A stretch of DNA of 64,000 nt from Bugula neritina (GCA_964035545.1 OZ037769.1:2294001-2358000), one strand, 5' to 3'. Shown: positions 167 through 56,852, counted from the first letter of the stretch. Notes: generated by a model not told the origin, from the letters alone. A program made the numbers and translations.

Positions 167-3100
167 TTGGTAGGAGGCCCCAATACTTCTGTAGGGAGAG
201 TCCCAATTAAATGAAACACAGTCTGTGGTTACACTGGTTATCTGTAAGTTGGTTGGTTTAAATTCTGCTGGAGCTGTAAATTAATTAAGAAGTACATGCT
301 TAATACATGGAACGCAGTAACTGAATCATTTTAATAAAAAATTGCTTCAGTTACTGCAATTTAAAGTTGTCTTCTTTTGTTTTAGATCGTGGACCTTTGA
401 TGGCATGTTGAGCCTGCTGATATGGCAGGTATCACAGTTTGGTGAGTGGTACTTATCAAACATTTACTTGTAGCAGTTTGGTTATCTGTGGAAATATCAC
501 ACACATTGAACTGAATATTAGCATCTATTATAGTAATACATTATTTGAATGTCTGCAATGCTAGTCGGTTTAATAAATTATTTTACATGTTTTTGAAGGC
601 TGCAAAAATTTCGCTATTTGTATTTTTGGCTATACAAATGTTGATAAAAACTAAATTAAGCAAAAATATGATGAAAGACAAATTAATTTTAACATTTTAT
701 TGTTGATTTGAGCAGTTTAAGTAGAAATTTATTATCTTCATAACTAGCGTGTATACTTTGCTGCGAGAAAGAGCTATAAGCAGCCTACAGTATTTATTAG
801 GCTAATGCTGGAGTAGGCCTATACATACAAGTTTAGATTTAAACTATATTAAGCAGAATATTTTCATGATCTAAGCAATTAGTTTGCAAAGAAAATAACA
901 ATATTTCATACATTAAGCTCAAGTTACTTATTTATCTGTAACATGTTTTTTGTTTTCTCTGAAATCCATCAGCTAAAATTCAAAAAGCAAATTTCTACTC
1001 ACTAAATCCATAGACTTCAACCTCTGTAAGGACTAAGCTCTGTCCGTACTCAGGATACAGAGGATTTTTCTTCTCCATAACAGCTACATACTGTGCATAG
1101 ACAGCAGTTGGTAAAAGATATTCATATGTTGAGACTAGTGTAGATACACTCTGAATCACATTCCACTGACTATAGTCATCAGCTGGGTTCAAGTTACCAG
1201 AAGTTTCTTTAGATAATATCTCAAATGGACCAATTTTATTAGCAGCAGACCCTACAGCATATCAATCAACATGCCTCTGTCTGTATAATCTGGTAAATAT
1301 ATGTTGTGAGTGTAATTGAATTATGTTTAAACAGAAATGCCTATATAGTTTGTGAAGTATTAAAATAAATTACGTTATATTTTTTTATTATCAACTGCAA
1401 ACACTTAAGCCCCAACAAAGACTTATCATCTGTGTGTCAAATTATTATGTCTACAAGTACATTTAACTTACCTATGTTATGTAACTTACCAGTGTATATA
1501 TTTATATTTGCAATGAAGAATTGTCCACCCAAGTCTACTCTCCACCATGGATTATCACTTAGAGTAGACAGGAAGCACTGAGTGCAGAACTTTGCTGAAT
1601 TCCATGAGTTGAATGAACCTGATTGGTCTCCATCCACCACTACACTTGGTGAACTACTCCTAGGGTTTTGTCCTGAGGAGGAGGTAGCTTTGTTTAAAGC
1701 TACATTTGATGGTGTGGGAGAAGCTAAAAATATACATCATAGATATTTGAGAATACAAAGTAAAATATAAGATAATGTTTGCACAATACACAATTTTTAC
1801 ACTTTCAATGCAAAAACTCATGATTTAAACAGGTTACTTAAACTTACAGAACTCTAATTTCTTTCATAAAAAATGCTTCATGAACAATATTTTTCAAGCA
1901 TATACCTATAGGATTCTTATGCAGCAGCTAAATATACCATAGTCACCTTAAATTTTAGTATTAGTATAAAACTTAGTATTTTCTTTTTTACAAACATTAT
2001 AAAATGTTTTGAAAAAAATTTTGTGGTACAAAAAGATAATTTTTTCCAACTATAAAATAAAACTCATTATGTTTCACTTGATGTAGAGTAGCACTACTAG
2101 TTAAAGACCAACTGAAACTCAGGCCTAAGCTAGTTTCAGATTTTGTTAACAATGGAAATTAGTGCATTATATATTATGTGGAAAAAGATACATGTCCAGT
2201 AAAAATGGCACAGGTAAAAATGGCACAGGTAAGAATGGCACAGGTAAAAATGGTACTGATAAAAATGGCACAGGTAAAAAAGGTACTGGTAAAAATGGCA
2301 CAGGTAATAATGGCACAGGTAAAAATGGCACATTTTTACATACTCTGCCAATTGTACCATTTTTACCTGTGCTACTTTTACCTAAATTTGTAGAGTAAAT
2401 ACTAAAACTACACTTTAATCAAGTATAATATTTACAAACTAAAATATTGTCCTATTATTTAGACATTGGCTTTACATTTAAACAGAATATATATATATTA
2501 TATATCACTTATATTTTATCAGGTGCTATAATTGTAAAGTTAGCACTGAACATAATTAATTCAAGCAGTAAAAGTAATGTAGTGTAATGAATACATAATA
2601 GTTAATCTAGCATTCAGCGTTGCGTTTAGCACAATGTTCCACTCAAATAGGTTATCGCATCACGTGATTCTCGCCTACGCAACGACTGCTAGTTGTAAAT
2701 TCATTAATTAGATATCAGCACGCTCTCACTCATTGGCTGTGGCGTTACGCTTAGGCAGCCCGGATGTTTGAGTGCAGACGTTGACCCTACAGTTAGTGGA
2801 ATAGTAGCGCGCTAGCGATGCAAGCTTATTACATCAATAACATCAGTTTTAAATGATATAATTAATAAAATACAAGTGAATTTAAATTGGAATTAACTTA
2901 AAGAGGCACAGTAGACCTGTAATACCGTTTCATAGAAACAAACTTAACCTAGCTAGCCACTAAAAGAAGGCAAGAGTTTCTTACTGTACATCAAACACCT
3001 AATGATAATCACCAAAATAGGGAAAGCCAGTCAGAATCAGATGATTCTTGTAGTAAAAAAAAGAAAGAAACAACCACATGTAGAAGTGCTCAGTCTACCA

Positions 3101-6100
3101 ATTCAGGTTTGACCTCGATGGTGATGCCTGTGTGGCTCTTTAGTGCGACCTATCCAGAACACGAAATTTTAGTATATGCACTACTCGACACAATGTCGGA
3201 TGCCACATTTGTAGCTGAACCTGCAGTTAATCAGTTAGAAACACATGGTGAGCCCACCACACTGAGCATCACAACAATAGCTACAGAAGATGAAGAAATT
3301 GATTGTGTGCAATACTCAAACCTGTGTGTGAGAGGCTACAATTCAAATGAAAAGATAAAAATTAAACGGGCCTACTCTAAAAAAGAAATTCCACTTGACA
3401 AGTCTCAAATACCTACACAGGGTATGACTGAAGGATGGTCTCACCTCAGGTCAATTGTAGCAGAAATACCACCTGTCCAGGATTGTATCGTAGGGTTGCT
3501 GCTGGGTTTTGACACAGCTAGAGCATTACTGCCACTGCGGTCAATAGCCGGCAAATTTCCAGATGATCCTTTTGCTGTCCAGACACCTCTTGGTTGGAGT
3601 ATTGTAGGTCAAGTAAATAAGAGAAAACAAAAACAGAACACCCTGCAAACTAACTCTAAATTTAAAAATGAGTCTCTACCTTGTGCCATCATACGTGCTC
3701 TTGAACAAGACTTTAAAGGTACTGAAGACGCCACACACAATGCTCTTTCCCAGGACGACAACCAATTTCTGGATATTATTCAGAAGGGCATCAAGCAACA
3801 AAAAAATGGGTTCTACACAATGCCTTTACTCTTCAAGCAAAAACCAAACATGCCTAACACTAGAAAGATGGCAGAAAAAAGGCTCCACTTGTTACAACAA
3901 AAATTTTCCAAAAACCCAGAATTTAAACAGGAGTATAAAGTCTTCATGAATGACATTATACGTAAAGGACACGCTGAGCCAGTCCCAAATGAAGAGTTTA
4001 ATGTTCTGCCACGGGACACAAGCTACATACCCCACTTTGGTGTACGGCATCCAAAGAAACAGAAATTGCGCGTTGTTTTTGACTGCAGTGCTAAAAGTAA
4101 TGGTATTAGCCTGAATGACCACCTACTTCAAGGACCAGATCAAATGAACCAACTAACCGGAGTACTACTTCGCCTTAGACAAGAAAAGATCGCACTAATG
4201 TGTGACATAGAACAGATGTTTCATAGTTTTAAAGTGAATCAAGCAGATAGAAACTACCTCCGTTTTTTGTGGTATGAAGATGAGGCTCTGACCACAGTGA
4301 GAGAATACCGGATGACAGTGCATCTTTTTGGTGCAACAAGCAGCCCAGGGTGTGCAGCTTTCGGTCTACGTCAGGCGGCAAAGGATCATGTAGAACCGAA
4401 TTGTCGAATCAGTCTCAGAGCTGCAAATTTTATAAGAGAAAACTTTTACGTCGACGATGGCATCCTGAGTGTTCCCACATCAGAAGAGGTCATTGCCGTT
4501 ATTAAAGAAGCACAGCGAATCTGTTCTAAAGCGAACATTCGACTACACAAGGTTGTCAGCAATGACAAAGAAGTGATGAAACACATCCCACAATCAGAAC
4601 TATCAAAGGCTGCTCAAGAGCTGGATTTTACAAAAGAAGCCTTACCAGTAGAACGGGCGCTAGGAGTAGAATGGTGCCTAGAAAGTGATTGCTTTCAGTT
4701 TCAGGTAACCCTGCCCGTTAAGCCAGTAACCAGAAGAGGAATTCTGTCAACTATCGCCTCTGTATTTGACCCCTTTGGTTTTCTGGCTCCTTTTGTACTG
4801 ATTGGAAAAAACATACTGCACGAAATGTGTCGTGATGGAGCTGGGTGGGATGATGAGCTTAAAGAAGAACTGCATGGACAGTGGTCGAAATGGATTGCAG
4901 ATCTCCAAGGCCTTGCCAAAGTAAAGGTTCAACGCTGTGTACTGCCCGAGGATTTTGAAGAGGTGCAAGAACAATCAGTTCACCATTTTTTAGACGCAAG
5001 TACTACTGGATATGGACAATGCTCATACATCAGACTAAAAGACAGCAAGGGAAGAGTACACTGCAGCCTCCTACTTGGCAAAGCACGTGTAGCTCCTCTC
5101 AAAACCACCACTATCCCTAGGATGGAGCTACAAGCTGCCGTGACCTCAGTGAGTGTTGCACAGTACTTGACAAAAGAACTCAGATTAGAAACTGTGGAAC
5201 AACATTATTGGACAGATTCGAAAATCATTTTAGGCTATGTCAACAACGAAACAAAACGATTCCACGTATATGTTGCCAACAGAGTACAGAAGATTACACA
5301 GGATAATTAAGGGCATCCTCAATTAGAATATCATAAATTTCTCTCAAAATGTAGTTTAGGTTCTTGAATAATATGGCTTTGTGGGTTGCATGCGTGTTGC
5401 CTACTTGCAATTGTTTAGCCTAAGATCAAACTACAACCAATGAGCAGCAACCTTCATTAGGGCTGCGTTATCTATCAACATTCCATTATGGGTGCTACAT
5501 AAACAAAGTACAAAGCAAGCTATTCATTATAGCCTGCCAGCTAGCAAGCCTGTAATTAGTATGTAAGCGCCAATATCTTCTCATCCCTACGCGCTCATTG
5601 AAGCGTGAAGTACTGCGCGCTGCTAATTTTCTATGAAAAAATATAGCATTTTCAGTGTATAAATCACCAATTTATGGGCAATCTAGAAGAGTTATTGGAA
5701 AAAGAAAAAAAGTTGCACTGGAGAAATATCTCAGGATTCCAGCAGTGCAATTTTTATTCAGATATCATGTTTTCCTGCTGAGATATTTTACTGGTACTGA
5801 AAAGTCAGCTTTTCAGGCAAAATTGGCCAAAATTGGGCAGTTTTCTGTCTATAACTTTGCAAAAAAAATGAAAATTCAAATTTCCAAAAAACTTACACTG
5901 GGGAAAAAGAAGATCTACAACATAGTTTTTAAATTTTGACTCTAGCACATTTAGGTGAGATTTTATTTTACTGGTACTGAATTCTTATATGATTACAATG
6001 CAAACCTCAGCAAGGCAGTTGCAGCTAAAAGGTTGCCCTTAACTATCCTGTGTAGAGAGACTACAAATCCTAAACAATGGCACTACATCAATACTATGGA

Positions 6101-9100
6101 AAATCCAGCAGACTTGCCATCAAGGGGCACCTCAGCCTCTAAGTTATCAGATTCTAAATGGCTAAAAGAACCAGACTTCCTTTGGAGTGAAAACCTGCCT
6201 GATTTTTCAGCGTGTCAAGAGAGTTTTCTTACAAGAGACAGTGATCCAGAAATAAAAACCTGTCATCGAACGCAAACTTCTAACTCCACCAGTAGCTGGG
6301 TTGACAGGCTATCGAAGTTCTCAGATCTGAATACAGCTATACGAGCAGTAACAACACTCCGCAAAGCCTGCCAAAACAAAAGTTTCATGAAAGCCCCCCA
6401 GGCAACCGTACAAGATAACGAAGAGACAAAGTTTTTATTTTTCAAATGGGCCCAACAAGAAGGTTTACCTGACTACAACAAAGTCAAAAACGGCACATTA
6501 GACAAAAAGAGTTCATTAAGAAAACTGGATCCGATTATAGATAAGTTTGGATTAGTGAGAGTTGGTGGACGACTGCAATCTACTGAGCTTCCATATAAAG
6601 AGACGAATCCAATAATTCTGCCTCGCCAATCACACATCACTCAATTACTAGTAAGACACTGTCATGAAAGAACAGCCCATCAGAGCAAAAATGCTACAAT
6701 AGCAGAAATTAGGGCATCGGGCTATTGGATAATAGGCTGCACTCATCTCATCTCATCTCATCTCATCTACTTAATCTCACTCGGAGCGCTTTGGCTCCTT
6801 TATCGAGATGCAGTGGTGTATGAACAATTGTTTAAATTATCAGTAGTAAGGAAGAAAACCATTTTGTCTACGAGATAAGAATATAGTTAATTATGCTTTG
6901 ATTCAAAGCTCAATAGCTAGCTACTGCCAGGAGAGAAAAAAAGAAAAAAAAAAAAAAAAAAAGTAAATAAATAAATAAATATACACCGCACAGCTCCAGA
7001 TGATATAAAGCAGAGTCGGTGTAAAGTGCTTATAATCAGTTAGGCAAAGCAGCTAGAATCATTAGAAAAGTTTATGGATGCGTGTTACTCATTTGGTAAA
7101 CACATGCATTCACCACTGTGTAAAATGTAGACGACAGAGACGACCTACAGAGACGCAAAAGATGGCTAGCCTCCCTGTAGAACGAACAACACCTGGTCCA
7201 CCATTTACGTATGTTGGCTGTGACTGCTTTGGCCCATTCTATGTGAAAGAAGGCCGAAAAGAGCAAAAACGATATGACCTTATATTCTGTGTATGGCATC
7301 AAGAGCCGTGCACCTCGAACTATTAGATGATATGAGTACTGACGTATTTATAAACTCATTAAGATGCTTCATAGCTATGCGAGGACCAATAAGGCAGCTA
7401 AGATCAGACAGAGGAACAAATTTTATAGGGGCAGCAAACGAATTTCACAAAGCTTTGACAGAAAGCGCTAGAAAGCTGGACAACTTTGCACTGCGGAACA
7501 ACTTTGATTTTGTGTTTAATCCACCTAACTCAAGCCACATGGGTGGCGTCTGGGAGCGCCAGATCTGTTCAGTACGCAACATCTTGAATTCTATGCTTGC
7601 ACAGCACAAGATGAGATTTAACACTAGCACTCTTCGGACCCTCCTGTTTGAGGTTATGGCAATAGTAAATTCTAGGCCTCTGGCTGTAAATGATGACTGC
7701 ACACCATTGACACCAAACCAGTTGCTGACAATGAAAACAAAGGTTGTGCAACCTCCACCAGGAGAATTTGATGACCACGATGTTTATTCCAGAAAACGAT
7801 GGCCAACACATTTTGGCCACAATGGCGATTTGAATACCTGCAATCTCTACAGGTTAGACAGAAATGGGAAGGCTCACAGCCTAATGTAAAAAAAGACGAT
7901 ATAGTTGTGGTGAAGGATGACCAGTCGGTACGCAACAGTTGGTCGCTGGCTCGGGTAGTGGAAGCTATACCAAGCAGCGATGGCAAGGTCCGCAAGGTAA
8001 AACTATTCTTAGCTGATAGCAGTCTTGATAGAAATGGGAAACGGAGATCTGACTTTAGCTACCTAGAGAGGCTGATTCACTCCATAGTAGTAATTCAGAG
8101 AGCGCAGTATTAAGTTTTGATTTGGCAATCTAAATCTAATCAAAGGGGGGAGTGTAAAGTTAGCACTGAACATAATTAATTCAAGCAGTAAAAGTAATGT
8201 AGTGTAATGAATACATAATAGTTAATCTAGCATTCAGCGTTGAGTTTAGCACAACGTTCCACTCAAATAGGTTATCGCATCACGTGATTCTCGCCTACGC
8301 AACGACTGCTAGTTGTAAATTCATTAATTAGATAACAGCACGCTCTCACTCATTGGCTGTGGCGTTACGCTTAGGCAGCCCGGATGTTTGAGTGCAGACG
8401 TTGACCCTACAGTTAGTGGAATAGTAGCGCGCTAGCGATGCAAGCTTATTACATCAATAACATCAGTTTTAAATGATACAATTAATAAAATACAAGTGAA
8501 TTTAAATTGGAATTAACTTAAAGAGGCACAGTAGACCTGTAATACCGTTTCATAAAAACAAACTTAACCTAGCTAGCCACTAAAAGAAGGCAAGAGTTTC
8601 TTACTGTAGCGTCGCCACTAACTATAGATGAGTTGTACTGGCAGTTGGAATACGTAAAAATAAAGTTACGAAAACCAACACCAGTACAACTCATCTATAG
8701 TTAGGGGCGACGCTACAATAATCATGACATAGCACTTGGCAGCTAATAAATTAACATCTAAATTTATATATTAATAGAAAGCTTCACTACATAACCGAGT
8801 AAAATAATTGCAAAAACGTTTTTAAGACAATTTTGATTTCAAATAAGCTCTTGAGATGTTTGGCGAAACATAGAGAATGCACATGCTTAATATTTAACTG
8901 AATAATTTGACACGTGCAATTATATTGCAGCTGCCAAAGTTGAAAGCTGCAACTTATTAGCAAATAAGTTTCAGCTTGCTGCTAAAAGCAGCCATAAAAC
9001 AAACGGAATATTTATAAAATGTATAAGTTAAACCAACCACAACAGTTTTTTAGTGTTTAGACTCTGTGTACCTGTGTATGTAACTATGTGTGTGCAAAAT

Positions 9101-10136
9101 CACACTGCTAGCACAAAAAAAAACATAATATATTCATTGTTGAAGTGAATTCAAAGAAAGTAAATTTTTACCCAGCATTTTTATAATCTGAATGTTAAGT
9201 TGCCAAATAAACCTTTTACAAACTGTTGCAATGTATAACTTTATTATATACAAATATTTTTTTTCTGGTGGAGTGAATGCAGGGTGTTAGTTGCTTTATT
9301 AGTTTTTGCTTTTATTTAAACCCTAAAAATCTCTTCTACTATAATAAACTGAAATTCCTTCCAACTAGTTACTATAGCAACTGTGCTATGATTATTCTAT
9401 GCCTTTCCTAACATCTGCTTCACTCTAGCTGTTTAAATTTTGTAAAATACAGGTTTTGGTCTTTACACCAGCAAAACAGTTTGCAGAGTTTATATGAAAT
9501 GCAAGCTGAAAGCTCAACAACAAACCTACTTCTAAATGTTTATTGCATAGCTCTATGTTCAAGCCTATTCAATTTTTTTCATGAAGAAGTTTAATATATA
9601 AATGAGATAATATTATAGAGTGTCAAACCAACAAGACATACTGATGGGTTTAATAATAGAGGAGCTAGTGGAGGCCAGGTGCTTAATATGCTTGTGCTTG
9701 TAAATAATAGACTGTTTTAAATAAAGGGGTTTATCCTAATATTAGTACTTATACACGACAGGGTCAGAAAACTTCAATAGTTCAGCAACTTTCAGTATCA
9801 CCTAAGTTTAGCTTTAAAACATGAGTTAAAAATCTCTGAAGTACAAAGCGCTTTTAGCGTAATAAATATAAACTAGAACGCAGGCTATAATTTCTCCTAT
9901 GTTATGCCTGGATGGCCAGCAGTTGTGGTGAGTGGGTCTACAGCTTACAGGCTAAACATTATGTTATGTCATCATGTCATTATGTCTCTACTCTAATTTA
10001 GCAAGAGCAAGATTATATCATATAATAAGTAAAATATTTTACCTGCAAGATCAAGATTATATTCTAATATAAGTAATGTTTTACCTGCAGACAAAGACAG
10101 CAGCATCAGCAGTAACACAGCTCTCTGCTCATCCAT
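167..10136 (-). CDS. Receptor-type PTP-like gene, paralog A, 5' part only (signal peptide + F-type-lectin-like domain + start of FN3); continues beyond the left edge
   Basis: Hand-spliced exons, all GT-AG and phase-consistent: 10085-10136 (MDEQRAVLLLMLLSLSA, phase 1), 1490-1723 (NVALNKA...VVDGD...CTQC...NPWWRVDL), 1003-1251 (...YVAVM...LVLTEVEVYG), 167-273 (PAEFKPTNLQITSVTTDCVSFNWDSPY...YQ). Exon 4 has the same 107-nt length as exon 4 of paralog B and 17/36 identical residues. PTP identity is inferred from paralogy; the catalytic exons are outside the window. The exon-1 assignment across the 8.4-kb intron is the least certain part. Confidence 0.8.
2197..2380. repeat. 15-bp minisatellite (AAAAATGGCACAGGT, about 9 units) followed by inverted degenerate copies; foldback-like
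   Basis: Direct units at about 2200-2332, then CCATTTTTACCTGTGC-type reverse-complement units at about 2345-2382. Explains the KNGTG, VKMAQ and YLCHF pseudo-ORFs. Confidence 0.85.
2533..2990 (+). repeat. 5' LTR of the BEL/Pao element
   Basis: Starts TGTAAAGTTAGC and ends CTGTACA; matches 8153-8608 at offset 5620 with 5 substitutions and no indels by eye. Confidence 0.95.
5297..6052. mobile_element. Non-autonomous TIR DNA transposon (756 bp, TA TSD, Tc1/mariner-type) nested in BEL RNase H
   Basis: TIR CACAGGATA(A/G)TTAAGGGCA(T/A)CCT at both ends; TA at 5295-5296 and 6053-6054. Removing it restores NRVQKI-RETTNPKQWHYINTMENPAD in frame. Confidence 0.93.
6747..7086 (-). mobile_element. 5'-truncated non-LTR retroelement 3' end with (ATGAG)n tail (CR1/L2-like), nested in the BEL integrase zinc finger
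   Basis: TSD ACTCAT at 6741-6746 and 7087-7092; (CTCAT)n run at the left end; small stem GGAGC...GCTCC next to the tail. Removal restores GYWIIGCTH-LVNTCIHHCVKC. Family assignment is inferred from tail type only. Confidence 0.8.
8153..8717 (+). repeat. 3' LTR of the BEL/Pao element including the terminal 113-bp hairpin
   Basis: Follows the PPT; matches the 5' LTR up to 8608, then the inverted repeat 8605-8717 ending TACA, then TSD ATAAT. Confidence 0.93.
8605..8717. repeat. Near-perfect hairpin (about 52-bp arms, AATAAA in the loop): either a MITE in a TA site or the native LTR 3' end
   Basis: TGTAGCGTCGCCACTAACTATAGATGAGTTGTACTGG... pairs with ...CCAGTACAACTCATCTATAGTTAGGGGCGACGCTACA; loop AAATAAAG. 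Confidence 0.9.
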
Positions 10137-10467
10137 ATTTATGTTGAGACACGAGGGTTAGTTGTAAGCCTGACCTACATTGAGAAAGGCTAACAGCCTT
10201 ATGACTATAGCTTTACTTTTTACTCACAGCTTACAAAACACCTTTTGTATTCATGTGTTATTCTTAGTCTGAGAACTGAATGGCAGTTCCATTCAATAGT
10301 TTTATTGTGAAAAGGTCAGGGTATGCCGTTTTAAGTAACTTCCTTGTTAATAGAATTCTGTAGGTGTAATAGAGGTGGCTGCTGTTATTAAACTGCACTC
10401 TATAATGCAGATTGTTCAACTATGTATACATGCTCAAAAATATGAGGTGACTTTCTGTCAAACTTAC

Positions 10468-10800
10468 CAACTGCTTAAATACACTCTCAGCTTCTTTTCC
10501 CAATAAATCTATTAAGTTGTCTACCTGCACTTTCTCCTCCCTTTCACTCAGCTGTGAGGTTCTCCTGTATCAACTGCATCTCCTGATCCAGTTACTTCAC
10601 ACTTCTCTAGCTTTACTGAAATCCAAGCCATCTGGTGGCGTATACCTGTAACTCCAGTAGCCATTTTACTTCTACTTCTTTCAGATTATTTGTAAACTCC
10701 TGACACCATGTAATCTATTCATTTACCACACAAGAACTTTTTCTTGTAGTTCTAGTCCTTTTTTATTTTAACTGTAGAACTCTAATCATATCATAGGTTG
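10468..10800 (-). mobile_element. Decayed Ty3/Gypsy relic: LTR 3' end + tRNA-Leu PBS + gag N-terminus
   Basis: Minus strand reads AATAAA...TTACA|TGGTGTCAGGAGT (PBS from 10708, complementary to the tRNA-Leu(CAG) 3' end ACTCCTGACACCA). ATG at 10664, then degraded MATG...PPDGLDFSKARE...NWIRR...YRRTSQLSEREEKVQVDNLIDLLGKEAESVFKQL, resembling Gypsy gag starts (PPxxFDFxKxxEW...VQVxTL...GxEAExI). Upstream LTR boundary not resolved. Confidence 0.75.
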
Positions 10801-17941: not shown

Positions 17942-18008
<67 letters not shown>

Positions 18009-21000
18009 CTGAATTTTAATACAATGTATTATCTACCATAAACCTACCTTGTGTTGCAATAAACAGGCTGGTCGTTTTGAGAAAGAATTTCTGAAAAAAG
18101 AAAATAAATGTTAGACAAATTATTGTTGCAATTTTTTTTATTTTAAGCAACAGATCAGTGATACTGGTTTATATTTTTTATAAAAGTTACAATTTTATAA
18201 TGTTTTGCCTAACTTTCAATATTATACTAACTTCAATATTATACTAACTTCAATATTATACTAACTTCAATATCACATTTACTTCAATATTACACTTACT
18301 TTAATATATCATACTTACTTCAATGTATGTAGCATTAATGTAGTCAGAGTGCTCAGAAGTTTGTCTTTGAAGTTTTACTCTCGTCTCATTAGCTGAAAAT
18401 AGTTAATAATTAGAGGTGTGTGTAATGACTCATAAACCATACAGAGGCAGCAGACAAAACTTCAAGAGAAACAACCTGTGTCTTACGCACCTCAAAGTTT
18501 TCCACATAATTTTGAAATTTTACCTGATATAATTTAAACTACCAAAACCAGTACTATAAAGTGTGTTTTAATGGTAGCATCATAAATTTGTTTTCATTAG
18601 CATTTTGAAAGTTAACAACTATTAATTAGCTATCCGGATTGTTTTAATTATCAATAAAACTGAAGTGAAACAACACAAACTACTGAAAAACACTGCATTT
18701 ACCTGGATAAACACCTCTGTATCTGTTCTTGCTTTTATTAGAAGGAAGTTCAGCAACTGACATCACCGGCTGAGGCAGGTTACCAAAACTCTAAAACTCA
18801 GACATAATTTTACTGAAAGCATCTAGTCTTATCTGTATATTGCATATTGTATATTGTATATTGTACATTGTATATTGCATATTGTATATTGTATATTGCA
18901 TATTGTATATATTGTATATTGTATATTGTATATATTGTATATTGCTGTATATTGGGAATTGTAATGAGATGACATGATTTGTTAAACTAATCTTTAAAAA
19001 TTTATTTTAATCTAATGCAGTCTTTGAGTACCTCAAATTGTTTCCTGATAAACTTGTCATCCTTTATGTACTCTTGTAGTTTGATAGTAGGAATTGAGGT
19101 CAGCTCCACTTCATCATAGGATGTTTTATTTTTAGCTGCTTCAGTAGAGCATTCTGGGATAGTGGCATACGCTGCTTCTAAATAATAAAAAAACATTTTG
19201 TTAGTTTTAAGCTTTAATTAATTTTTGCTTTTAATTATTACTTCAAAGATTTCATACAACTTTTTACATTACATATAAGATTTATACTAAAATTATTAGG
19301 TAATTTTCATTATAAGTTACAAAGGTGTTAAATGTATAATTTAAGCAAATATTTTGCTTTATAGATATAAACTGCTTGTCTGACTTTTTTCTCTTCAAAT
19401 GTTAAGCCAGATAAATAGCCGTGTAAACTTGTGCAAACAATTGTATTCTATTAAACTTTTGTGAAGTATTGTGAATAAACATTTATATAAGAGAAAAGTA
19501 TGCTTTCAGCCAGTTGTTTCTATGAATTCATTAAATCATGCAACAGCAATTTGCTGACAGTTGTTCCATCAGAAAACATTGAATAAGCTGAATAAAATTA
19601 TGAAAAATTCTATTTTATAAGTATACATGCATCATGCAAGGATGGTGTAAACTATAAAGGTTTTATACTTTGTTTTGAACTTAATACAAATTTTGATACG
19701 CAACAGTTCAAAATAGTACCATACCATTTAGCTGTTTAGATCTTTCAGAAAGTTCCAGAGCTTGGTATTCATTTGGTCTATTTGCAGACGCAGACTCCTT
19801 TTTAGTTTTGTTTGCAGAAATGTTTCTAAAAAAAAGAATATTAACAAAATTATTTCAATTCCTATATAGGATAACTATAAACAAATGTATAAAAACAATA
19901 CCTACGCTCTGTAATAAAATAGCTGCAATAGATCATGATGCTTAAGATATATAAATAGTTATGACTTGTACATGAATAGGGCAGTTTCAAAAAGGAAAAC
20001 CGTCAACTAAGCCTTTATAAACTAATCTAAGTCAGCCATTATACATTTGCATACTTTAAAAAACCTGTTTTAAAACTTAAAAATTCTGACGCAGAATGTC
20101 CCAATATTATATGATCTACTATTTTCTCAGAGCTAATTCTATTAAACCAACTGCTATATATATCCACTGTTTTAATAAATATATTATATTTTTTTCTTTT
20201 TAATCTCTTCTGATTTTTTGCTCAAAATTAGTTTAAAAGAGTTAGAAGTTTTAATAAAAGATAGTGAAGAACTTTGCTTTATAGTGAAAATGTTATACGA
20301 ACATTATTAGCACACCTATATTAAAATTAATTTCAAGAAAAGAAAACTGAAAACAGTATATATTAAAACAGTAATTTAGATTTCTTTTTATTAATAGAAT
20401 TATAATAAGTTTACCTACCGCCTTCTCTTAATCAGCACCACAAGAAGTACAACTCCAACTAACAGGACAAAAGCAGAGACAGCTATAGCAACTATACAAC
20501 TTAGACCACATACTGGATCTGTAAGTAAATAGTATAAACATTATATTTAAATTATATTTTGAGCAATAAAATATCAACAACTTGTACTTTTTCAACCCAT
20601 AAATGTTGATGTTTATTGAAGTATTTGTGAATATTACGTTGTATTACTCATACATCACATTACATTACAGCTTTCAGAATGTTGACATTAAAAAGATAAC
20701 GCTGTTCTTACCTAAACGAACTGTGATTGCATCGTTATAATACTCAACCAGTACAAAGCCATCCTGTGGTAATTCAAAATAAGATTAACTAGCGGCAGAT
20801 CAAAAAACAACGGTAACAGTTTTTATCAGTTCTATTACTCAAAAAAACTGATTTTGAACACCATATAAGGAAGTCATAGCATTATTTTAAGAGAAATATT
20901 TTTTCAAATGCAATTATTGTTTTGTGTCGAAATGCAGCAGCTTTCATCTAAAAAAGACATTGCTCTTTTTTATCAAAAGCTAGTTATGAAATAAAGGTTA

Positions 21001-24000
21001 ATTTTTTGACAATTTAATAATAATTTTATGACTCTGTTCAAACTGTAATCAACCAACCTTTAGGTTTGATGCATTGAATAATTAAGTTACATATCTACTA
21101 TAATTAGTAATACTATAGCTGGTGGAAAGATATGATAAAATGACATGAAACAATGTTTATAATGCATTTAGTAGCATAACCAACTAGATAAATATCTCAG
21201 TACCTCCATCTGTACTGTAACAGCCTGGTATATCTTATAGTCTTGGTTTGGTTCCAGTGGTGCATTATAATAGTCTTGATATGTCTTTCCATCTCCAACT
21301 CTGAAGTCATACCCATCACTATCTACTAGAGAACTGTCAATCTCTGCTGTTATGTAACAATCTGGGTCAAGGTCACATTCTGGTGGTAGTTGGACAGATG
21401 ATCTTTTCTTTCTCTTACTTGTTGATGTCTCTTTTTGGACAACAAACACGTAGGAACTGGAATAATGAAGTAGAGGTAATAAGCAGCTGTGCATTATATA
21501 TACCAACAAACAGGTACAAGCTGAAATAACAATATAATAATATATGCCTGCATGTTTGTGTGCATAATATATTATATTGATAAAGCATTGATTAACTCAC
21601 TCTGGTTTCCTGTTGTCCAGTGTAACTTGAGGGACAGTAATTATAAAAGACTTTCCCTTATTCTTAGAATGCTTTAGCTCTGCTTTGTCTCTCTGTCTCA
21701 CTAAAGTTTAGTACAGATTTTATAGTTGACACTGAATATGTTACATCACTATATTCAGCTGTTTATTTGTAACTTGTTAGGAGTAAGTTAATTTATAGCT
21801 GATCTACTTAATACTTGAAACATACCTGCTATTTTAGTGTATCCTGTTTGTGAAGTCACTGGACTCTCTCCAGCACTGTTTATAGCCTTAGCACTGCAAT
21901 TCACTTTCTCAGCTGATCTGAATTCACACAGGCTAACTGGTTGTTTATCTGTTGCTAGGATACTTTGATAGATTCCTTCTTCTGTGTTGGCATAGTAACA
22001 AATGTACTAAAACATAAGTTTGGAAAATCGCAACAAAAGATTAAGTTTACAATAAAGCTGGTACTTTTATAAGTGACAACCATTTATTTCTCAAAGGCAA
22101 CTTTAATCTAAAGTAAATATAATTTTGTGTTTGTCCTACTCAACTTCCTACTCAACTTTTTCTGAACAGCAAATTATACATATGTAATAAAAGTTGACAC
22201 GTAGCATTAAGACCTAAAGTAGATATGATTTGATAGTTCAAGGTAGTCACAACATGCACATACATAACAAATGTTACAATTATTTTTATTTGCACAACTT
22301 TAAAAGCAACAAATGAGTTATTTCACCTGATACTCAGTGATGATGCCATTGGGTTGAGTTGGATCTTGAATAGTCAGATGAGCACAGCTCGTGTTAAAGT
22401 CTATAGAGAGACTTGGTCCATCATCTGGAGCTGCAAGTATATTGCATTGTTTTTACTACCCTACATTTTATAATATTCATTATACTTTATTCTAGTCTTC
22501 AAAAATTAACTAGTTGATTAGCTTAAAAATGATGGAGCTCAAAAAATAAGCTGCCTATTGCAAAAAATACATGCATCTGTAAAAAGATTTCCTGCATTAT
22601 TCATTTAGTTCATACTAAATTTAAATTTAATAATTTTGAAAATTACTTTAAAATTTTTTCAAAAATGTACTCAATATTCACATACCCAGCTCAGGTGTGG
22701 TGATGTAGCGAGGTTCTGCAGAAGATTGATTGAGGGCGTTGTTCACAGCTATCAGTATAATAGTGTAGTTAGTGTATGGATCTAAGTCTTCTAGAACTTT
22801 CTCTCTGGTCTCCTCAACTGAATATCTCTTATAGAAGATCTGTTGGTCATTGAGTTTTATAGTCAGATCATAGTGGGAGATGGAAGCACAGGCTGGGTAT
22901 GATTCCTAAAATTACAAATAATTACACTGTTACATATTAATTACTAACCAGCACTGTACTTATAGTGCCACTAAATAGAATATTTTGAAAATATGGTAAA
23001 GCTAGTAATTGCAATTCTTTAATAGTTGTTAAAAATGTTTGATCATTTGCAAGAAACTCAAATGAGCAAGTTTAGTGCTGGTCCCTACATAGGAATTTAG
23101 GTTTCAAATTTAAAATAGCTTCAGAATTTTTCTCTGTAAGTTAATTTTTGTTAGAGTACTTTGGTGTACAATCAGCTTTGAGTCTCCTTGCAAGCATGTA
23201 GCTTGTTAACACTATGTTTCAATGGTTTTCAACATACTTCCCAGGTTATCTTTAGCCTTATTCGCTCTCTTTCTATAGGTGTATGGGAAGATTCTACTAC
23301 GGAATATTCTGGAATAGATGGATCTGTAAAAGTAATAATAATAATAATAACATTCAATTCAATTTTAAAAGCATTTTAGAAGCTGGCTTTCTCACTATAT
23401 CTATATAATACAGTGCTTTAACTCTTACAGCAAATAATGATTTTTTAAAATTGTAAACCTATAAACTGTTATATATGATTAAATTTATATTTAAACGCAA
23501 AAGGCGTTTTAAATACCAATTCAAGATAACCATTGTAATACAACAAATGGTAAATTTTTTTATATTATATGCCAATTTTTAATACATGCAGGCATCAGTT
23601 GTTTAGTATATCATGGAAGAAATAGAAATCTGACCTGAAGTGTAATATTTTATATTTAAAGTGATTAAGTTTCATGCAGGTTTGTTTCAATACACATTAA
23701 TTTTTTCTAAACAAGGTGTACCTATAGTCTTAGCTCTCAAATGCAACCGTTTAAGAAAAGTATGCACAAGTTGAGTTTTTTATTTTTTCATTTTAATAAT
23801 GTTACAGACAATGAATTGCTTCACTTAAGCCACAAAACCATATATTGAGTGTTTATTTATAAGTATTAGTTTTGTAAGTTTGGAGATTAAGATTTCGTCT
23901 TGCATGATAGTGCAGATCGTAAGATGTAATTCTTAAATGTAAATATAATAATAAAATAATTATAGTGAAAGCCCTTCATTAACATTGAACATGTTATGGT

Positions 24001-27000
24001 TTACTGTGGTATTCTTTATTTTAGATTGAAAAGTTAATAATTTATTAGGTATATTTTAGGACTGAAAAAATGATTTATTTACAATTTGAAATAACTAAAA
24101 TATATTCACTTTGCTTTTTTTAATAAAAAGCATATAATTCCCAAGTTTACTTTTTTGCAGCCAAACCTTTGATCAGATTAAGTTGAACTGTTTCATCATT
24201 TATTATTGTGCTAATGTATAATATGAATTTATTATGCTTCTTTCACTCAACTCACCAGCACAATCTGTTGTCACACTGTCTGTAGATATCTCACTATCTC
24301 TATTCCCTTGGGAGTTACTCTCTCTTCTAGCTCTAATATTACATATTACCAGTTCATGTGGCTTATATCCGCAGAGTTCCTTGTTGTCAGGAAAAGTCAT
24401 CCATATCTGGCTGTTGCACCTTACCTGACAATTGAACAAAGAAATGCATAATTAGTACATTTCATTGTGTGAAATATGAATGCATGTTATCAATTTGATT
24501 TACAATTCATATCCCCAACATCTACTGCTGACAGTTCTGAGTACCTGATATACTAGCCCACTTTCTGGTCCATTAGGATAGAGTACAGGATCATAACTCA
24601 GACTAACACAGTATGGAGATACAGCTGTTAGTTTAAAGTTTCCTGGTGCTACTTGAGGAGCTGTTGATATAATATACATAGAAGTACAAAGTCAACCCTA
24701 AATTAAGAAATACTCACAGGGCATGTAATAGAAATTTTTATAAATGTTATATATAGAGAATAGATATACTGATTTTTTAATAAAAGGGTTTTTTATAAAC
24801 ACAGATTTCCTTTTACCTAATTACAAGTAAACTGATTTTACATCATTCAATAATTTTTAAAATATTTAACTTGATATATCACTTTCAATCAACCATCTGT
24901 TTATTTTTAAAAAGCTAAATAGGCTACTTATTCTTACGTAATCCAATTGATACTTCCAGAGATTTGGTTACAGGTGAAGACAAGTCTCCATCTTTGTTTT
25001 TGATTTGTACTTTAACTGTGATTGTATCTTCACTGTCTCCATATACAGTGTAACTCTCTTGATTATAATTATTAACTACTTTTGATTCTGTGGTTGAGTC
25101 TATTTCTACTCTGTATGGATTTGAAGGATGAACACAGGATGTGTAAGTTGAAGGAACCTACAATCAACATATAAAACTCAAGAAGTTATTAACACCTAAT
25201 AGTAATTATAACTGCGACTTCCATTATTACAACAAACAGCTAACTAGTTGCACAAAACCTTACTGTCCTACAAAGTAAACAATCTAAAATAACAACTAGA
25301 CGAAGATCTTGAAATCAAGTGTTATTTTGTATCTTTTTTATGTTTAAGAAACAACTTAATTTACCTATTTCTTTCAAAACAGTATGATAAAAGCAATTCT
25401 TATAATAATTCATTGGCTATATAGCATGCATACATAAAAGCTGTTATTTTCAATTGACTAAAAGGTTTTGCTACTCTATTGAGTTATGTGCAACATTTAG
25501 ACTCTTCAGCAATAATACTTTTTTACCTTCCAAGAGACAGAGTACTGGTAGCGCCATCTTCCTCCATTTTGTACTTTACTTCCTGTACTGAATGTGACAT
25601 CAACAGGTTGAGCCACAAAAAGGTCTAGAAAAATATTAATTTTTTTGAAATAATAACCAAGTAAAATAACTAGCAGTAAGACAGGTTTATACTGAGATTC
25701 AAATATAGTTATTGCAAAATAAAAACACTGCACCTTAAACTTGCTTCAGTATTTATTTGACTCTTTCATCAAGATTATTTCACTGTCCAAAATTTCATGT
25801 TTCATTATTAATTGCAAAGTTGAATAAAAAGCTCTGCATGGTATACAATTTTTTAAAGGATGTTGCTTCTGTTTAAAAAGCAGATATAAACTAATCAACT
25901 TGCACTAAATAACAACTGCAATAACGAAACGTAAAAGACTTACCTAGGCACTCATGTACTTCAGTTTCAATGACATCATCAACTCTGACACTACACTGTA
26001 GACCTTCAGCTGGTGTCAGACCACACACAGTGACATAAGTATTACCTCCTGATGATCTCCAAGAAGAAGTTCCACATGAAAACTGAAAGTTAAAAGCAAC
26101 ATTTCAATTATAGTGATAATTTTTACGACAACAGTTCTATTGTGATAGAATTTTCAAGAGAATAAGTTTAGGACAAAAATACTTCAAAAATATATTTGTT
26201 GTAGTAGTAGCTGGTAATATTAATTCAATCATACAAATAATGACAAATAAACTCAAGATGATGATATAGATGATACTTCACAGCCAGCTTCCACACAAGA
26301 GTGAATATAATATTTAGCAAGTTATATAATCTGAAACTAATCAAATCAACACAACATAATATACTCATACCTGATAGTTAGCTTCTACATCTGTATATGG
26401 ATTATCCCAGTCAAGTCTCACACAATCAGATGATATCTGACTCAGTTTCAGGTTTCTTGGTTTAAAATCAGCTGGAGCTGTAAATAATTATAATTACTTT
26501 CAACATTAGCTTGAACTAACAATAAAGATAAATATAATTTATATAACTTTGAATATTAATTAGAATTAAATAAATATTAAGCAATGTTAAATATATTCAT
26601 AATAAGTAAAAATGTTTATTTTAAATGCTTAAGAATAATATTATATGTTGAAAGCAATAAATTATTTCTATTTTAGGTAGAATATATTTGAAAGTAAAAT
26701 AAGTGTTTGCATTCTGTGTGCAGATCAATGATAGCAACAAAAAATTGCCAATACAATTAGAGTTTATATAATTCTAAAAGTTTAATGATCCAACTTTCAA
26801 TTCATTTTTATATTCATTATACATTATAGCTTGATTAGATTTAATATAATTTTATTATATCCATTAAGTAATATGAATGTTTCAAATTATTTATATATGT
26901 GTTATATATATCTTTCTAGGGTAAAAGACTAAAATTGGTTGACTTTGTGTATCAACATACAATGGCTCTAATTAAAATGTTAGGCTATTGATAGTTTTTT

Positions 27001-30000
27001 GCTGTTTGGTATTTTATTCATTGGCGAAAATTTGAGATTAGCAAAAATGGAGATATCAATATTTTTGCTAGAAAAAAATTGTTATACTACACATTCAGAA
27101 TACCAATAGGATATAAATATAAATATAAAAAAACAAAAGTTGTTTTGAAAGTGTGTAAAGAATAAAGTGTAAGGTAACACTAGATTTTTTCTAAATCTTA
27201 GAAATGTGTTCGCCAATTTACATTTTACTGTTCAAAATTGATAAGTATATTTAGCTTTTAAAAGATGCATGTGAGAAAAGATGTGGGATAGAAAACATTG
27301 AAATTAAAGGAATTTATACTTCACACGCTATTACTTGTAAGGTTATTTTATTTAAGGAGAAAAATATTCCGTGAGAGTTTCTTAGCATAATTCCTACTTT
27401 TACCTTTTTAAGCACAATTTATATTCATTATTTTTGTCGAGTAAATTTAACGCTATGTGTTCACATTAAATGCATAATATTTTTTTATGCTCTATCACTT
27501 TGCCCAATAAGTACACATAACATGTCGTTGAGCTAATCTGTATTAAACTAATTTAATTTGTGAAGTCAGCAAATGAAATTAATTTTTAAACGGTTTGTCA
27601 AATATACGCTATACAAAAATTTTGCTTTTTGCCTCTCTATAACTGCTAATTTATAGTCACTCTCCCTGTGAGAAACTCTAAGAGTGAAGGTTCATATAAA
27701 GTGAGCTTATAAGGACTTTTTCTGATGTGGAACAAGGGCAATTATAAACGAATGTTCTTCCTAACATAACCTATAGCTTTTACTAAATATTGAACCCATG
27801 ACTTTGTGTTTACTAATCCAGTCTTTAACCGCTAGACCTTGACTGCTCTCCAAATCTGCTTTATATTTTGCACCAACCTTTATAACGCTACACTGTTGTT
27901 GTTTACCATTGATTTTTGTTCTAACAACCTAACTTATATTATATGTATATTTTATATAAATGTGTACCAGTACGTTATTCAACTCACCATATCCAAACAC
28001 CTCAACTTCTGAGAGAGTTAATCCACCAGAAGATTCTCTCATCACAGCAACATACAGAGAGTATGAAGCTGGTCTTATGTCAACTTTCCAATGATTTAAT
28101 CCACTTCCCTCATAATAAACACTGGTCCAGTAACTCTTGTGATTGACTGGATGCACATTGCCAGTGTCAGGTTTAGTAAGTATGTTTACTCCGATCATTC
28201 TAATAAAAGGATGACCTGCAGTGTGTACAAACACAAAACAATTATAAAATCTGCTCTACTACTTTAAAACTATAATTTAACAAGTTATTAGAACCTTTTT
28301 TTAGTTTTTAGTAAACTTCAACATAACTAGCTCTTAAGTTGTATGAAGACAGCCAATTTTTATTCAAAGTTTCACAGTAGGTTTCATCCTGGATAAATTC
28401 TTCCCAGTTAGACGATATTTTTAATTTTGTTACCTATATAATTGTTGTATTGATTGCTAAATATACCTTATGTACTTATAGCTATAATAATAGCTAATAT
28501 AAATTATTTAGAATAATAGCCCAATTTCCCCCCTCTAGATTTTTGTGAGACCAAAAAACGGTAATTAATTAATAATGAACATTATCTTTAACAAATACTT
28601 ATTAATGAAATACTTTTTCAAACACCGACAAGTATAGAAAATGCAAAATAATAAGTTAATGCAGATCAAAAGAATTTACTGTATATTTATTAAATAGCAA
28701 GCAGTTGATTCAAGTTTACTTAAACACACATATATTTCAATAACACTCAAATAAATTTCTTATAAGATATATATCGTATCAAAATAAATAAATAGTGTCT
28801 AAGTGGGAAGCATCTATCTGGGATGACATCGAATAGTATGAAACCATAGTGTTCGAAAAACACCAGTTTAGAAGACTAAGTCACTTTAACCACATTGCAA
28901 ACAATCAGATTCGTATTATATATACTAATGCTATTTGTTCTATAACTTTTACATGACATTTATACAGCCTATGTAATTTATAATTATAATTTTTTTATAA
29001 AGGTTTTTAAATGTTTAAATAAGTATCTGATTACTTGTTATAGAAGCTGGTTGTTGTTTAGTTTTCAGGAAAAATAATTCCACCAACATCACTATAATGC
29101 TAAATGTTCAATCATGTTCAACAAAAGATATGAAACTATCATAAGGATCCCAGTAAACCTTACTTAATGTTTTGCGAAATAACTTTATAATCTAACAAAT
29201 CTTCTAAACGTTTTATTATATAGCAAAAGGCTGCCCTTCTTCAACAATGTCTATATTCTGAATAGAATATAGAATATTTAAGGATATGCAAAATTTATGC
29301 TCCTACATTTCCAAAATATGAAGCCATGCAATTAAAATACGAATGTAAATAACACATGATAATTCGCTAACAACTCACCTGTAAATACATTGACTTCAGT
29401 AACAAAGTACTTGTTTACCAGATCTATTCTTATCCACATGTTGACATCAGTTGAAGTAGAAATGTAGCATGCATTACATTCTACCTCAGAGTTGGTTATA
29501 GCTGGTGCACTAGAACCCCATGAAGTTATCTCAGCATATCTGTCTCCATCCACTATCACACTGATGTCATTACTACCTCTGGTACTTGGTGGAGATGATT
29601 TGTATACTGATTTACTTCGGGCTAAATTTTGAAGCACTGCTAAAAGAATAAAACACATATAGATATATACGAAATGATAAAATAAATGTGTGCAGCATGT
29701 GTAGATCTATTTGCAGAAGCAAGTGTAGTAAACTGCAAGGTACCAAAAGATTTATGCAGTAATTATTTTGCAAACTTGATTTATTGATCGCTATAAACTA
29801 TTACATGCATTTTTCCTAACAGCTTATAGATGCGCTAAGATCACTGCAAATTATGTATGTAAAACATGTCATCTAAATTTATTAAAACACAGTTTTACCT
29901 TCCGCATTGAATTTACTTTATACTCACAATACTTCAAACACAGCAGCAATTTTTACTTCAAGCATTATAATTGAATTATAGTTAAGCAGCTTGGCTATAC

Positions 30001-30288
30001 CATTACAGGTTATAATCTAAAATTAGCCAATTTTATATTTCGAAGAGTTACTGCTACTTGATCACATTATAAGTAAAAGATTGTAGACAGTTCTGCTCTG
30101 AAGCTACCAAATGAGTCATGTTGAAAACACATCTTATACATTCCACTATTTAGTGAAATCAATTTAGTAATATTTAATTTATATAGACCAATGTAAATAA
30201 CAAACAAACCTTCAGCAACTGCAGCTATCTCTACAAGTAGTAAGAAAACCACAAGTTGTTTGCAGGTGATTAGCATCCCCCTCTTCAT
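12430..30288 (-). CDS. Receptor-type protein tyrosine phosphatase, paralog B (signal peptide, F-type-lectin-like domain, 5 FN3, juxtamembrane domain, TM, PTP D1 + D2); 34 exons, about 1484 aa
   Basis: Exons (all GT-AG, phase-consistent, total 4455 nt): 30210-30288, 29379-29639, 27988-28215, 26371-26477, 25944-26082, 25527-25624, 24938-25157, 24545-24660, 24256-24424, 23238-23323, 22686-22905, 22327-22430, 21826-22006, 21601-21700, 21204-21456, 20712-20763, 20419-20518 (TM), 19725-19825, 19032-19177, 18703-18790 (KNRY), 18319-18392 (DYINA), 18048-18090 (FIATQG), 17507-17604 (DFWLMIW), 16631-16756 (KCEQYWP), 16137-16285 (WPDHGVP, VHCS), 15914-16049 (TGVGRTG, IIQT), 15487-15645, 15315-15387, 14755-14825 (YINA), 14255-14377 (FIATQLP, DFWRMI), 13453-13587, 13094-13284, 12774-12909, 12430-12522 (TGA). 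Confidence 0.93.
16897..17440 (-). mobile_element. tRNA-derived SINE copy interrupted by a MITE
   Basis: Head AGGAGCAGCTGTGGTCTAGAGGTTAGAG on minus at about 17440-17410; tail TATAGTCACTATC...GTGAGAAA at about 16900-16926, matching other copies; MITE at 16983-17318 lies between them. Confidence 0.75.
16983..17318. mobile_element. MITE (336 bp, about 70-bp TIRs, TAA TSD; PIF/Harbinger-like)
   Basis: GCCTAGGGCCACAGGGTGTGTATTTTCGCATGCGAAAATTGAAATCACAAGTAGCAAAG... is mirrored at the right end; TAA at 16980-16982 and 17319-17321. Confidence 0.9.
17944..18005. repeat. (AT)n microsatellite
   Basis: Direct read. Confidence 0.95.
18210..18325. repeat. About 17-bp tandem repeat (ACTTCAATATTATACTA) derived from an exon/donor junction
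   Basis: Minus-strand units ATTGAAGTTAGTATAAT resemble the real junction ATTGAA|GTAAGTATGAT at 18319. Confidence 0.8.
18834..18954. repeat. Heptamer-like (TATATTG/CATATTG)n simple repeat
   Basis: Direct read. Confidence 0.9.
27650..27851 (-). mobile_element. tRNA-derived SINE copy (diverged)
   Basis: TATAGTCACTCTCCCTGTGAGAAAC tail and GAACCCATGAC...TTTACTA...TAACCGCTAGACC head match the copy at 60953. Confidence 0.8.

Positions 30289-45723: not shown

Positions 45724-56852
<11,129 letters not shown>

Follow-up and report, generated by a model that had tools for sequence, protein, structure and literature searches.

A Clustered Family of Predicted F-Type-Lectin-Like Receptors with Phosphatase or Tyrosine-Tail Ends in the Bryozoan Bugula neritina

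Two receptor-type protein tyrosine phosphatase (RPTP) genes, designated as A and B, were recognized in a 64,000-nucleotide (nt) stretch of the Bugula neritina genome (GCA_964035545.1 OZ037769.1:2294001-2358000; C5:2294001-2358000), which is called the window here. The host assembly is 216 Mb in size and AT-rich (~31% GC). A and B probably encode type I membrane receptors of a bryozoan-expanded family with a lectin-like head and fibronectin type III (FN3) repeats, in which the copies ending in protein tyrosine phosphatase (PTP) domains and the copies ending in a tyrosine tail would form paired outputs. The array to which the two genes belong looks like an undescribed paired sensor family. Exon boundaries were obtained by reading the DNA and with a splice-chain model anchored on paralog conservation, and all the gene structures below are predictions of this kind. 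Family, structure-sequence and library searches were run exon by exon.

Layout and Shared 5′ Exon Structure of Genes A and B

Genes A and B are arranged head to tail on the minus strand, and their first four exons have matching phases. This arrangement had been proposed in a preliminary description of the window, and it was read again from the DNA and with the splice-chain model. The exons are as follows, in window coordinates.

30288-30210, minus strand: gene B exon 1, ATG and signal peptide (MKRGMLITCKQLVVFLLLVEIAAVAE), ending in phase 1 at the donor GAAG/gtttgt
29639-29379, minus strand: gene B exon 2, N-terminal half of the lectin-like domain, with phase 1 at both ends, containing the conserved motif NMWIRIDL
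28215-27988, minus strand: gene B exon 3, C-terminal half of the lectin-like domain, with phase 1 at both ends and LTLSEVEVFGY as its last residues
26477-26371, minus strand: gene B exon 4, 107 nt, first half of FN3-1, phase 1 to 0 (Pfam fn3, E 0.02)
10136-10085, minus strand: gene A exon 1, the most plausible candidate for the ATG and signal peptide (MDEQRAVLLLMLLSLSA), with a phase-1 donor
1723-1490, minus strand: gene A exon 2, N-terminal half of the lectin-like domain, with phase 1 at both ends, containing NPWWRVDL
1251-1003, minus strand: gene A exon 3, C-terminal half of the lectin-like domain, with phase 1 at both ends
273-167, minus strand: gene A exon 4, 107 nt, first half of FN3-1, phase 1 to 0

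Exon 1 of gene B has an alternative, longer donor at 30108, likewise in phase 1. The signal-peptide exon of gene A has an equivalent in A2, a paralog from another cluster, where it lies 2 kb upstream of the lectin exon. The ATG at window position 1997 was rejected as the signal exon of gene A, since a phase-1 donor is missing there and A2 shows no conservation of it.

The predicted exons of A and B resemble each other far beyond chance, since their BLASTP comparison gives E 1e-8 to 1e-36. The acceptor context of the FN3 exon is identical in both genes (tttacag/CTCCAGCAGA). In the FN3 half-domain, 17 of the 35 whole codons are identical, or 18 of 36 if the shared split codon is counted; the preliminary description gave 17/36. 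The lectin exons are 31-39% identical, with length differences of 27 nt and 21 nt corresponding to loop indels, in agreement with the earlier observation that the N-terminal domain is more diverged and contains such indels. The intron inside the lectin-like domain is ~1.1 kb in gene B and 0.24 kb in gene A.

Stalk, Membrane Segment and Phosphatase Domains of Gene B

Gene B is included entirely in the window. It is predicted to encode the lectin-like head, six FN3 repeats, an RKKR furin-type site, a transmembrane segment (TM), and two PTP domains, D1 and D2. Downstream of exon 4, the following parts were assigned.

26082-21826, minus strand: rest of FN3-1 and FN3-2 to FN3-5, splice-chain model with paralog support; predicted exons 26082-25926, 25624-25527, 25157-24938, 24660-24545, 24424-24256, 23323-23238, 22905-22686, 22430-22327, and 22006-21826
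21700-21601, 21456-21204, and 20763-20712, minus strand: FN3-6 (FN6), with the furin-type site SKRKKR/SS
20518-20419, minus strand: TM exon, GLSCIVAIAVSAFVLLVGVVLLVVLI followed by KRRR, a hydrophobic stretch and basic stop-transfer signal as judged from the sequence
19825-19725, minus strand: juxtamembrane exon, from motif reading and the splice model
19177-15487, minus strand: D1 in nine exons, with KNRY, WPDHGVP, VHC/STGVGRTG, and QTE
15387-12430, minus strand: linker, D2 and stop codon in about seven exons, whose ends are the least certain

Pfam fn3 was matched with E 2e-4 on 22905-22681, and the remaining exon-wise FN3 matches are weak but consistent, because each FN3 domain is split over two or three exons. 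FN6, whose exon 21700-21601 was located through paralog conservation, is similar to Pfam Fn3_PTPRU (E 8.6e-9) and PTP_tm (E 7e-5), as well as to the fourth FN3 of RPTP mu (8a16, E 1.3e-4).

Single D1 exons of gene B match Pfam Y_phosphatase with E 1.8e-12, 1.8e-10, and 7e-7, each above the 20.9-bit cut-off, and among solved chains those of PTP sigma and LAR come closest to them. The full catalytic motif set (NKSKNRY, YTAWPDHGVP, VHC/STGVGRTG, and IIQTE) is present in D1 of both B and A, and D1 of gene B looks like a competent phosphatase. D2 of gene B has the P-loop VTCSDGGAKCG, and the best matches of a D2 exon are PTP epsilon, sigma, and alpha. It is likely to be a pseudo-phosphatase, because the P-loop Arg is replaced by Lys and the WPD Asp is missing.

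A signal peptide and a single TM ahead of the PTP are predicted in both A and B, as expected of classical (class I Cys-based) receptor-type PTPs. By these matches, gene B has a LAR-like cytoplasmic part and an RPTP mu-like membrane-proximal FN3, without the subtype-defining Ig or MAM heads. Pfam scans of the ectodomain exons revealed no Ig match, which would characterize type IIa RPTPs, and no MAM or Ig match, which would characterize type IIb RPTPs.

The main rival to a paired family starts from these same similarities. A and B could be ordinary LAR/R2-type adhesion or guidance RPTPs whose Ig/MAM tip was swapped for a lectin-like module, binding matrix or cell-surface glycans in zooid budding, neural or larval development, with the tandem duplication being incidental and without any part in sensing self, non-self or microbes. 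Such an origin seems rather unlikely. It is consistent with D1 and D2 being nearest to PTP sigma, LAR, and PTP alpha/epsilon, and with the membrane-proximal FN3 and furin site resembling those of RPTP mu; the evidence from copy number, selection and distribution is weighed below.

Gene A beyond the Window

The 110 kb to the left of the window was examined. Gene A continues ~20 kb leftward with ~8-9 FN3 repeats, an SRKKR/A site, a TM and a complete D1, but no D2. The possibility that gene A lacks TM and PTP exons, considered in the preliminary description, is therefore dismissed. Relative to gene B, nearly the whole of D2 has been lost in a 2.7-kb deletion, and the reading frame of the linker exon meets a stop codon; gene A is thus predicted to encode a single-PTP receptor. 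Its D1 exons are 73-100% identical to their gene B counterparts. The furin-type site is kept, though the FN6 exon is only 36% identical to that of gene B. An architecture in which an F-type lectin head is directly followed by FN3 repeats and tandem PTPs, as originally suggested, thus applies to gene B with its D1 and D2; for gene A, with D1 only, the tandem part does not hold.

Lectin-Like Head

For each half of the head, a profile was built from 7 paralogs. The solved structures best matched by the first-half profile are FBP32 (3cqo, E 2e-6) and the eel agglutinin AAA (1k12, E 9e-4), and the one best matched by the second-half profile is again FBP32 (E 0.004, C-terminal strand). In Pfam, the family PF22633 is matched by the half-domain only, with E 1.1e-5 for the A exon (26.4 bits, just below the 27.8 cut-off) and E 0.07 for the B exon. 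The name F-type-lectin-like, given to the head from its sequence alone, is supported by both profiles and by this family.

The Six-Gene Array and the Two Cytoplasmic Ends

A and B were revealed to belong to a tandem array of six genes, all on the minus strand, in the order B, A, C, D, D′, and E.

Gene B, minus strand: B-type head; D1 and D2
Gene A, minus strand: A-type head; D1 only
Gene C, left of the window, minus strand: B-type head; Sushi-TM-tail, interrupted by an in-frame TAG immediately behind the TM
Gene D, left of the window, minus strand: B-type head; Sushi-TM-tail intact
Gene D′, C5:2223966-2240500, minus strand: no lectin exon detected; Sushi-TM-tail
Gene E, left of the window, minus strand: B-type head; D1 and D2

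The clustered genes share related ectodomains and carry opposed cytoplasmic ends. B and E end in tandem PTPs (D1 and D2), whereas C, D, D′, and B2, a gene from a second cluster, end in a Sushi domain, a TM and a tyrosine tail. The Sushi domain of the array is recognized by Pfam with E 6e-9. When B is compared with C, D or E, the head is 71-72% identical, FN1-5 is 81-84% identical, and FN6 reaches 94-98%. The tail is ~88 residues long and contains four tyrosine motifs, EYAEV, TYESM, NYEKV, and LYQNM. The four tyrosines are conserved in all four tail copies, which are 64-96% identical to one another, and the C-terminal half of the tail is also conserved; the most divergent copy (64%) is in the second cluster, at C5 8.57 Mb. 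A single gene alternatively spliced to PTP and tail ends was considered and rejected, as tail exons are found only in C, D, D′, and B2. A phosphatase output, as had been proposed for the cluster, is predicted for B, A, and E, but it does not extend to the B-type-headed neighbours with a Sushi-TM-tyrosine tail.

The second cluster, at C5 8.50-8.58 Mb, includes A2 (C5:8506069-8533293), which is A-headed with D1 and D2, the B-headed tail gene B2, and B3 (C5:8578700-8580850). The lectin exon of B3 contains stops, and no FN6, TM, PTP or tail exon was found downstream; B3 is probably a pseudogene fragment. In genome searches, at least 14 lectin-head exons were found in four or five clusters, on C5 (2.2-2.3, 8.5, 1.47-1.49, and 0.48-0.51 Mb) and on C7, where the copies at C5 1.46-1.52 Mb, C5 0.48-0.53 Mb, and C7 2.16 Mb are counted from search matches alone. 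The family is thus expanded, as had been anticipated in the preliminary description. The FN6 module is present in six copies of 94-98% identity and in many more distant copies on C3, C5, and C1. The genome also contains at least 30 PTP D1-like exons, ~16 weak relatives of the gene D tail exon on C1 (27-45% identity), and weak lectin-head and D1 relatives at C5 0.48-0.52 Mb.

Ordinary adhesion or guidance receptors with an exchanged tip are argued against by these at least 14 clustered heads, by loops that vary from copy to copy, by the truncated copies and by the exchange of cytoplasmic ends. Developmental RPTPs are usually single-copy and conserved.

Some copies show signs of decay. In gene C, the in-frame TAG is located at C5:2254696-2254698 (~-39300 in window coordinates), where gene D has CAG, and the four-tyrosine tail behind it, 96% identical, would therefore go untranslated. 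Copy D′ includes exons for a signal-like sequence and for FN3 repeats, an FN6 that matches the one of gene B at 98% identity, Sushi, TM and tyrosine tail; with no lectin exons detected, it should be a variant without a head or else a copy in decay. The array might thus be largely evolutionary debris, with one or two functional genes amid partial duplicates decaying after unequal crossing-over and transposon activity, and with the paired tails being accidental. The TAG of gene C, the lectin-less D′ and the stops of B3 all fit this explanation, as do the D2 loss of gene A via the 2.7-kb deletion and a retrotransposon in its intron 1. It is nevertheless highly improbable: all examined exons are open in B, A, D, E, and A2; the ratio of nonsynonymous to synonymous substitution rates (dN/dS) is well below 1 in FN3, FN6, D1, and D2; the four tail tyrosines and the C-terminal tail half are kept across copies down to 64% identity; and the furin site is conserved across head types.

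Selection and Mosaic Ancestry

Codons were compared per exon and pooled by counts. Among the B-type copies, dS is ~0.2-0.3, and the modules gave the following values.

Lectin head: dN/dS 0.44-0.91
FN1-5: dN/dS 0.38-0.48
FN6: dN/dS 0.10-0.34
D1 and D2: dN/dS 0.18-0.35

Every module has dN/dS <1, indicating purifying selection, and the lectin head is the fastest. The variation of the head is concentrated in loop patches between invariant strands, with a local pN/pS up to 2-3 in one loop of the second lectin exon (LEC2). In gene B, the variable patches correspond to residues 36-48 of the first lectin exon (LEC1) and to residues 1-8 and 34-46 of LEC2. When replacement and silent changes were compared between head and stalk with the Fisher test, p<0.05 was obtained in only 1 of 10 pairs. 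The variable tip is thus real in amino-acid terms, with only weak support as accelerated evolution. Of the variable ligand-binding tip in the preliminary description, what holds is that the head is the most diverged module (dN/dS 0.44-0.91 versus ~0.4 for FN3); the excess is modest.

Purifying selection on all modules and the weak replacement excess in the head are also compatible with the adhesion or guidance receptors introduced above. They bear in addition on a role in gamete or larval recognition instead of immunity, either in sperm-egg recognition or self-incompatibility in a sperm-casting hermaphrodite, or in settlement upon a biofilm-glycan cue. F-type-lectin-like heads with loop variation and a lineage-specific expanded family would suit such a role, and oyster bindin, a diversifying F-lectin, offers an analogy; this support is indirect. 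With dN/dS <1 overall, the strong diversifying signal typical of gamete recognition proteins is not seen, and this role would be extremely improbable.

The ectodomains of A and B are saturated (dS >1, 36-54% identity), whereas their D1 exons are 90% identical with dS 0.15, and the similarity reaches into the introns. The comparison indicates that A and B are two old head types sharing a recently homogenised D1, and not a recent tandem pair. The preliminary view of a tandem, strongly diverged pair is accordingly kept with respect to the head-to-tail layout and the ectodomains, and revised with respect to D1. A2 is a mosaic as well: its head, FN1 and FN2 are of the A type, and its remainder from FN3 on, including FN6, TM, D1, and D2, shares 82-98% identity with gene B. 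Gene E combines a B-like ectodomain with a diverged PTP region (63% identity) that includes two near-identical exons. The mosaic ancestry of A and B, A2, and E indicates that recombination or gene conversion has put heads, stalks and cytoplasmic ends together in new combinations.

Distribution and Literature

A library of 1.84 billion representative proteins was searched with the profile of the lectin half-domain, and the best 150 of 160 relatives were inspected. The lectin exon has its nearest relatives in bryozoan-associated metagenomes, as fragments of exon size (JGI contigs labelled AY690838). Other sampled relatives are multi-lectin proteins with PF22633, several of which have bacterial secretion domains. 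No PTP signature was found among the best 150 of the 160 relatives, in a library where spliced proteins of this lineage seem to be poorly represented. Widespread orthologues are therefore argued against only weakly, and the lack of a PTP-linked head relative among these 150 speaks to the same limited extent against adhesion or guidance receptors with a swapped tip.

The label AY690838 is the accession of the B. neritina mitochondrial genome (PMC2678162). A 6.3-kb contig with this label (JGI metagenome 3300002729) contains a member of the family whose exons and introns together match gene D at 77-78% identity. It should therefore be another paralog, or come from a sibling species within the B. 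neritina complex, and not be an allele. A scan of metagenome contigs revealed a single weak, uninformative locus. In searches of the literature, neither an RPTP headed by an F-type lectin nor a recognition receptor of bryozoans was found to be described.

Proposed Mechanism and Its Weighing

The array has grown by tandem duplication, with recombination or gene conversion reassorting heads, stalks and cytoplasmic ends. The lectin-like tip may bind a glycan or another surface ligand through its copy-variable loops, and furin-type processing may occur at the RKKR site of the membrane-proximal FN3. PTP-ended copies would dephosphorylate nearby substrates, and tyrosine-tail copies would become phosphorylated and recruit SH2 adaptors. 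Related heads with opposed outputs would then follow the logic of paired receptors, with the phosphatase built in. Candidate targets of recognition are a microbe, a symbiont, conspecific tissue, a settlement cue or matrix.

Several observations weigh against paired sensing of this kind, in addition to the outcome of the Fisher test. The His of the fucose-binding triad aligns with Ile in the B type or Leu in the A type in 7 of 7 copies. The first Arg and the Asp of the triad are probably absent, as judged by eye at the exon 2/3 junction, and at the last triad position an Arg (B) or Lys (A) may correspond, where the alignment is uncertain. Since His is replaced in every copy, the head is predicted to be F-type-lectin-like with a canonical sugar site that is not conserved, and with the first Arg probably missing too, sugar binding is not assured. 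The tail motifs include no [ILVS]xYxx[ILV] sequence and no spacing of the immunoreceptor tyrosine-based activation motif (ITAM); they are non-canonical both as ITAM and as immunoreceptor tyrosine-based inhibitory motif (ITIM). All gene models are predicted and some copies may be pseudogenes, as the signs in C, B3, and D′ suggest. A non-immune role would be equally compatible with the data, because most LAR-type RPTPs act in development, in adhesion or guidance.

A more specific version of the paired-family proposal would place the array in bryozoan self/non-self or symbiont/microbe recognition of a novel principle. Interchangeable heads would be mounted on a LAR-like phosphatase or on a docking tail with several tyrosines, the phosphatase copies would directly erase the phosphotyrosine of their tail siblings when both engage the same surface, and exon-level recombination would make the repertoire. 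This version is decidedly unlikely. Bryozoa form colonies that may fuse with or reject one another, and in Bugula a symbiont is transmitted vertically. To our knowledge, no recognition or allorecognition receptors are known for Bryozoa, and the array supplies specific candidates whose expression, glycan binding and polymorphism can be studied. It also illustrates clearly how receptors diversify through module swapping.

Retrotransposon in Gene A and Other Features of the Window

One transposable element was found inside gene A.

2533-8452, plus strand: BEL/Pao long terminal repeat (LTR) retrotransposon in intron 1 of gene A, antisense to the gene, with Peptidase_A17 (E 6e-46), RVT_1, and rve

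The element is 5.9 kb long and flanked by 300-nt LTRs (2533-2832 and 8153-8452) of 99% identity, which points to a young insertion. Its pol is split over several open reading frames (ORFs) with matches to Pao peptidase, reverse transcriptase and integrase. The signal-peptide exon of gene A is located upstream of this element, which accounts for the extra distance between signal and lectin exons in this gene. A 15-nt tandem repeat of ~9 copies (window 2199-2332) adjoins the left LTR and yields GTGKN/FLPVP repeat ORFs in all frames.

Three more features were observed in the rest of the window.

38030-38448: tandem repeats with a 29- or 60-nt period, in 7-14 copies and with ~90% matches, in gene-poor surroundings
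48972-49301: perfect (AG)165 microsatellite, which causes a spike of GC skew at 48-50 kb
61119-61451, minus strand: ORF of exon size that resembles the GMC oxidoreductase C-terminal domain (Pfam GMC_oxred_C, E 8e-11) and belongs to an unrelated gene at the right window end

Comparison with Known Systems

A receptor phosphatase with an F-type-lectin-like head lies outside the classical RPTP subtypes. The type IIa RPTPs (LAR/PTPRF, PTP sigma, and PTP delta) resemble the array genes in the FN3 stalk, the furin-type site near the membrane, the single TM, and the tandem of a D1 with active motifs and an inactive D2, and the D1 exons score best against PTP sigma and LAR. Type IIa RPTPs bind glycans, in the form of proteoglycans. 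The array genes differ in that an F-type-lectin-like domain, instead of N-terminal Ig domains, follows the signal peptide, that the family is multi-copy and clustered, and that gene A has no D2.

The type IIb RPTPs (mu, kappa, T, and U) share with the array a non-Ig head, in the array presumably a beta-sandwich too, followed by FN3 repeats, tandem PTPs, and a membrane-proximal FN3 with a basic cleavage site, as seen in Fn3_PTPRU and the fourth FN3 of RPTP mu. However, the head of the array genes is not MAM, no Ig domain follows it, and D1 is closer to LAR and PTP sigma than to mu and kappa.

F-type lectins (eel agglutinin AAA, striped bass FBP32, and PF22633) are the best sequence matches for both halves of the head, and their hallmark strand (NPWWRVDL or NMWIRIDL) and the C-terminal LTLxEVEVxG strand are present in the array heads. 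Unlike them, the array heads have no fucose-binding His and seemingly no first Arg, and they are predicted to be fused to a transmembrane signalling protein instead of being secreted.

Vertebrate paired receptors (KIR, LILR, SIRP, Siglec, and Ly49) also form tandem clusters in which related ectodomains are joined to opposed cytoplasmic ends, and they too have been shaped by duplication, recombination and truncation. In the array, by contrast, the heads are lectin-like and followed by FN3, and are neither Ig nor C-type lectin domains; the identity of the heads is only 71-82% between PTP and tail copies; and the tails carry YxxV, YxxM, and YxN motifs in place of a canonical ITIM or ITAM. The "off" arm of the array would carry its own phosphatase, with no recruitment of SHP-1/2 through an ITIM. 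If true, the pairing of phosphatase and tyrosine tail would be a paired-receptor design unlike the ITIM/ITAM scheme of vertebrates.

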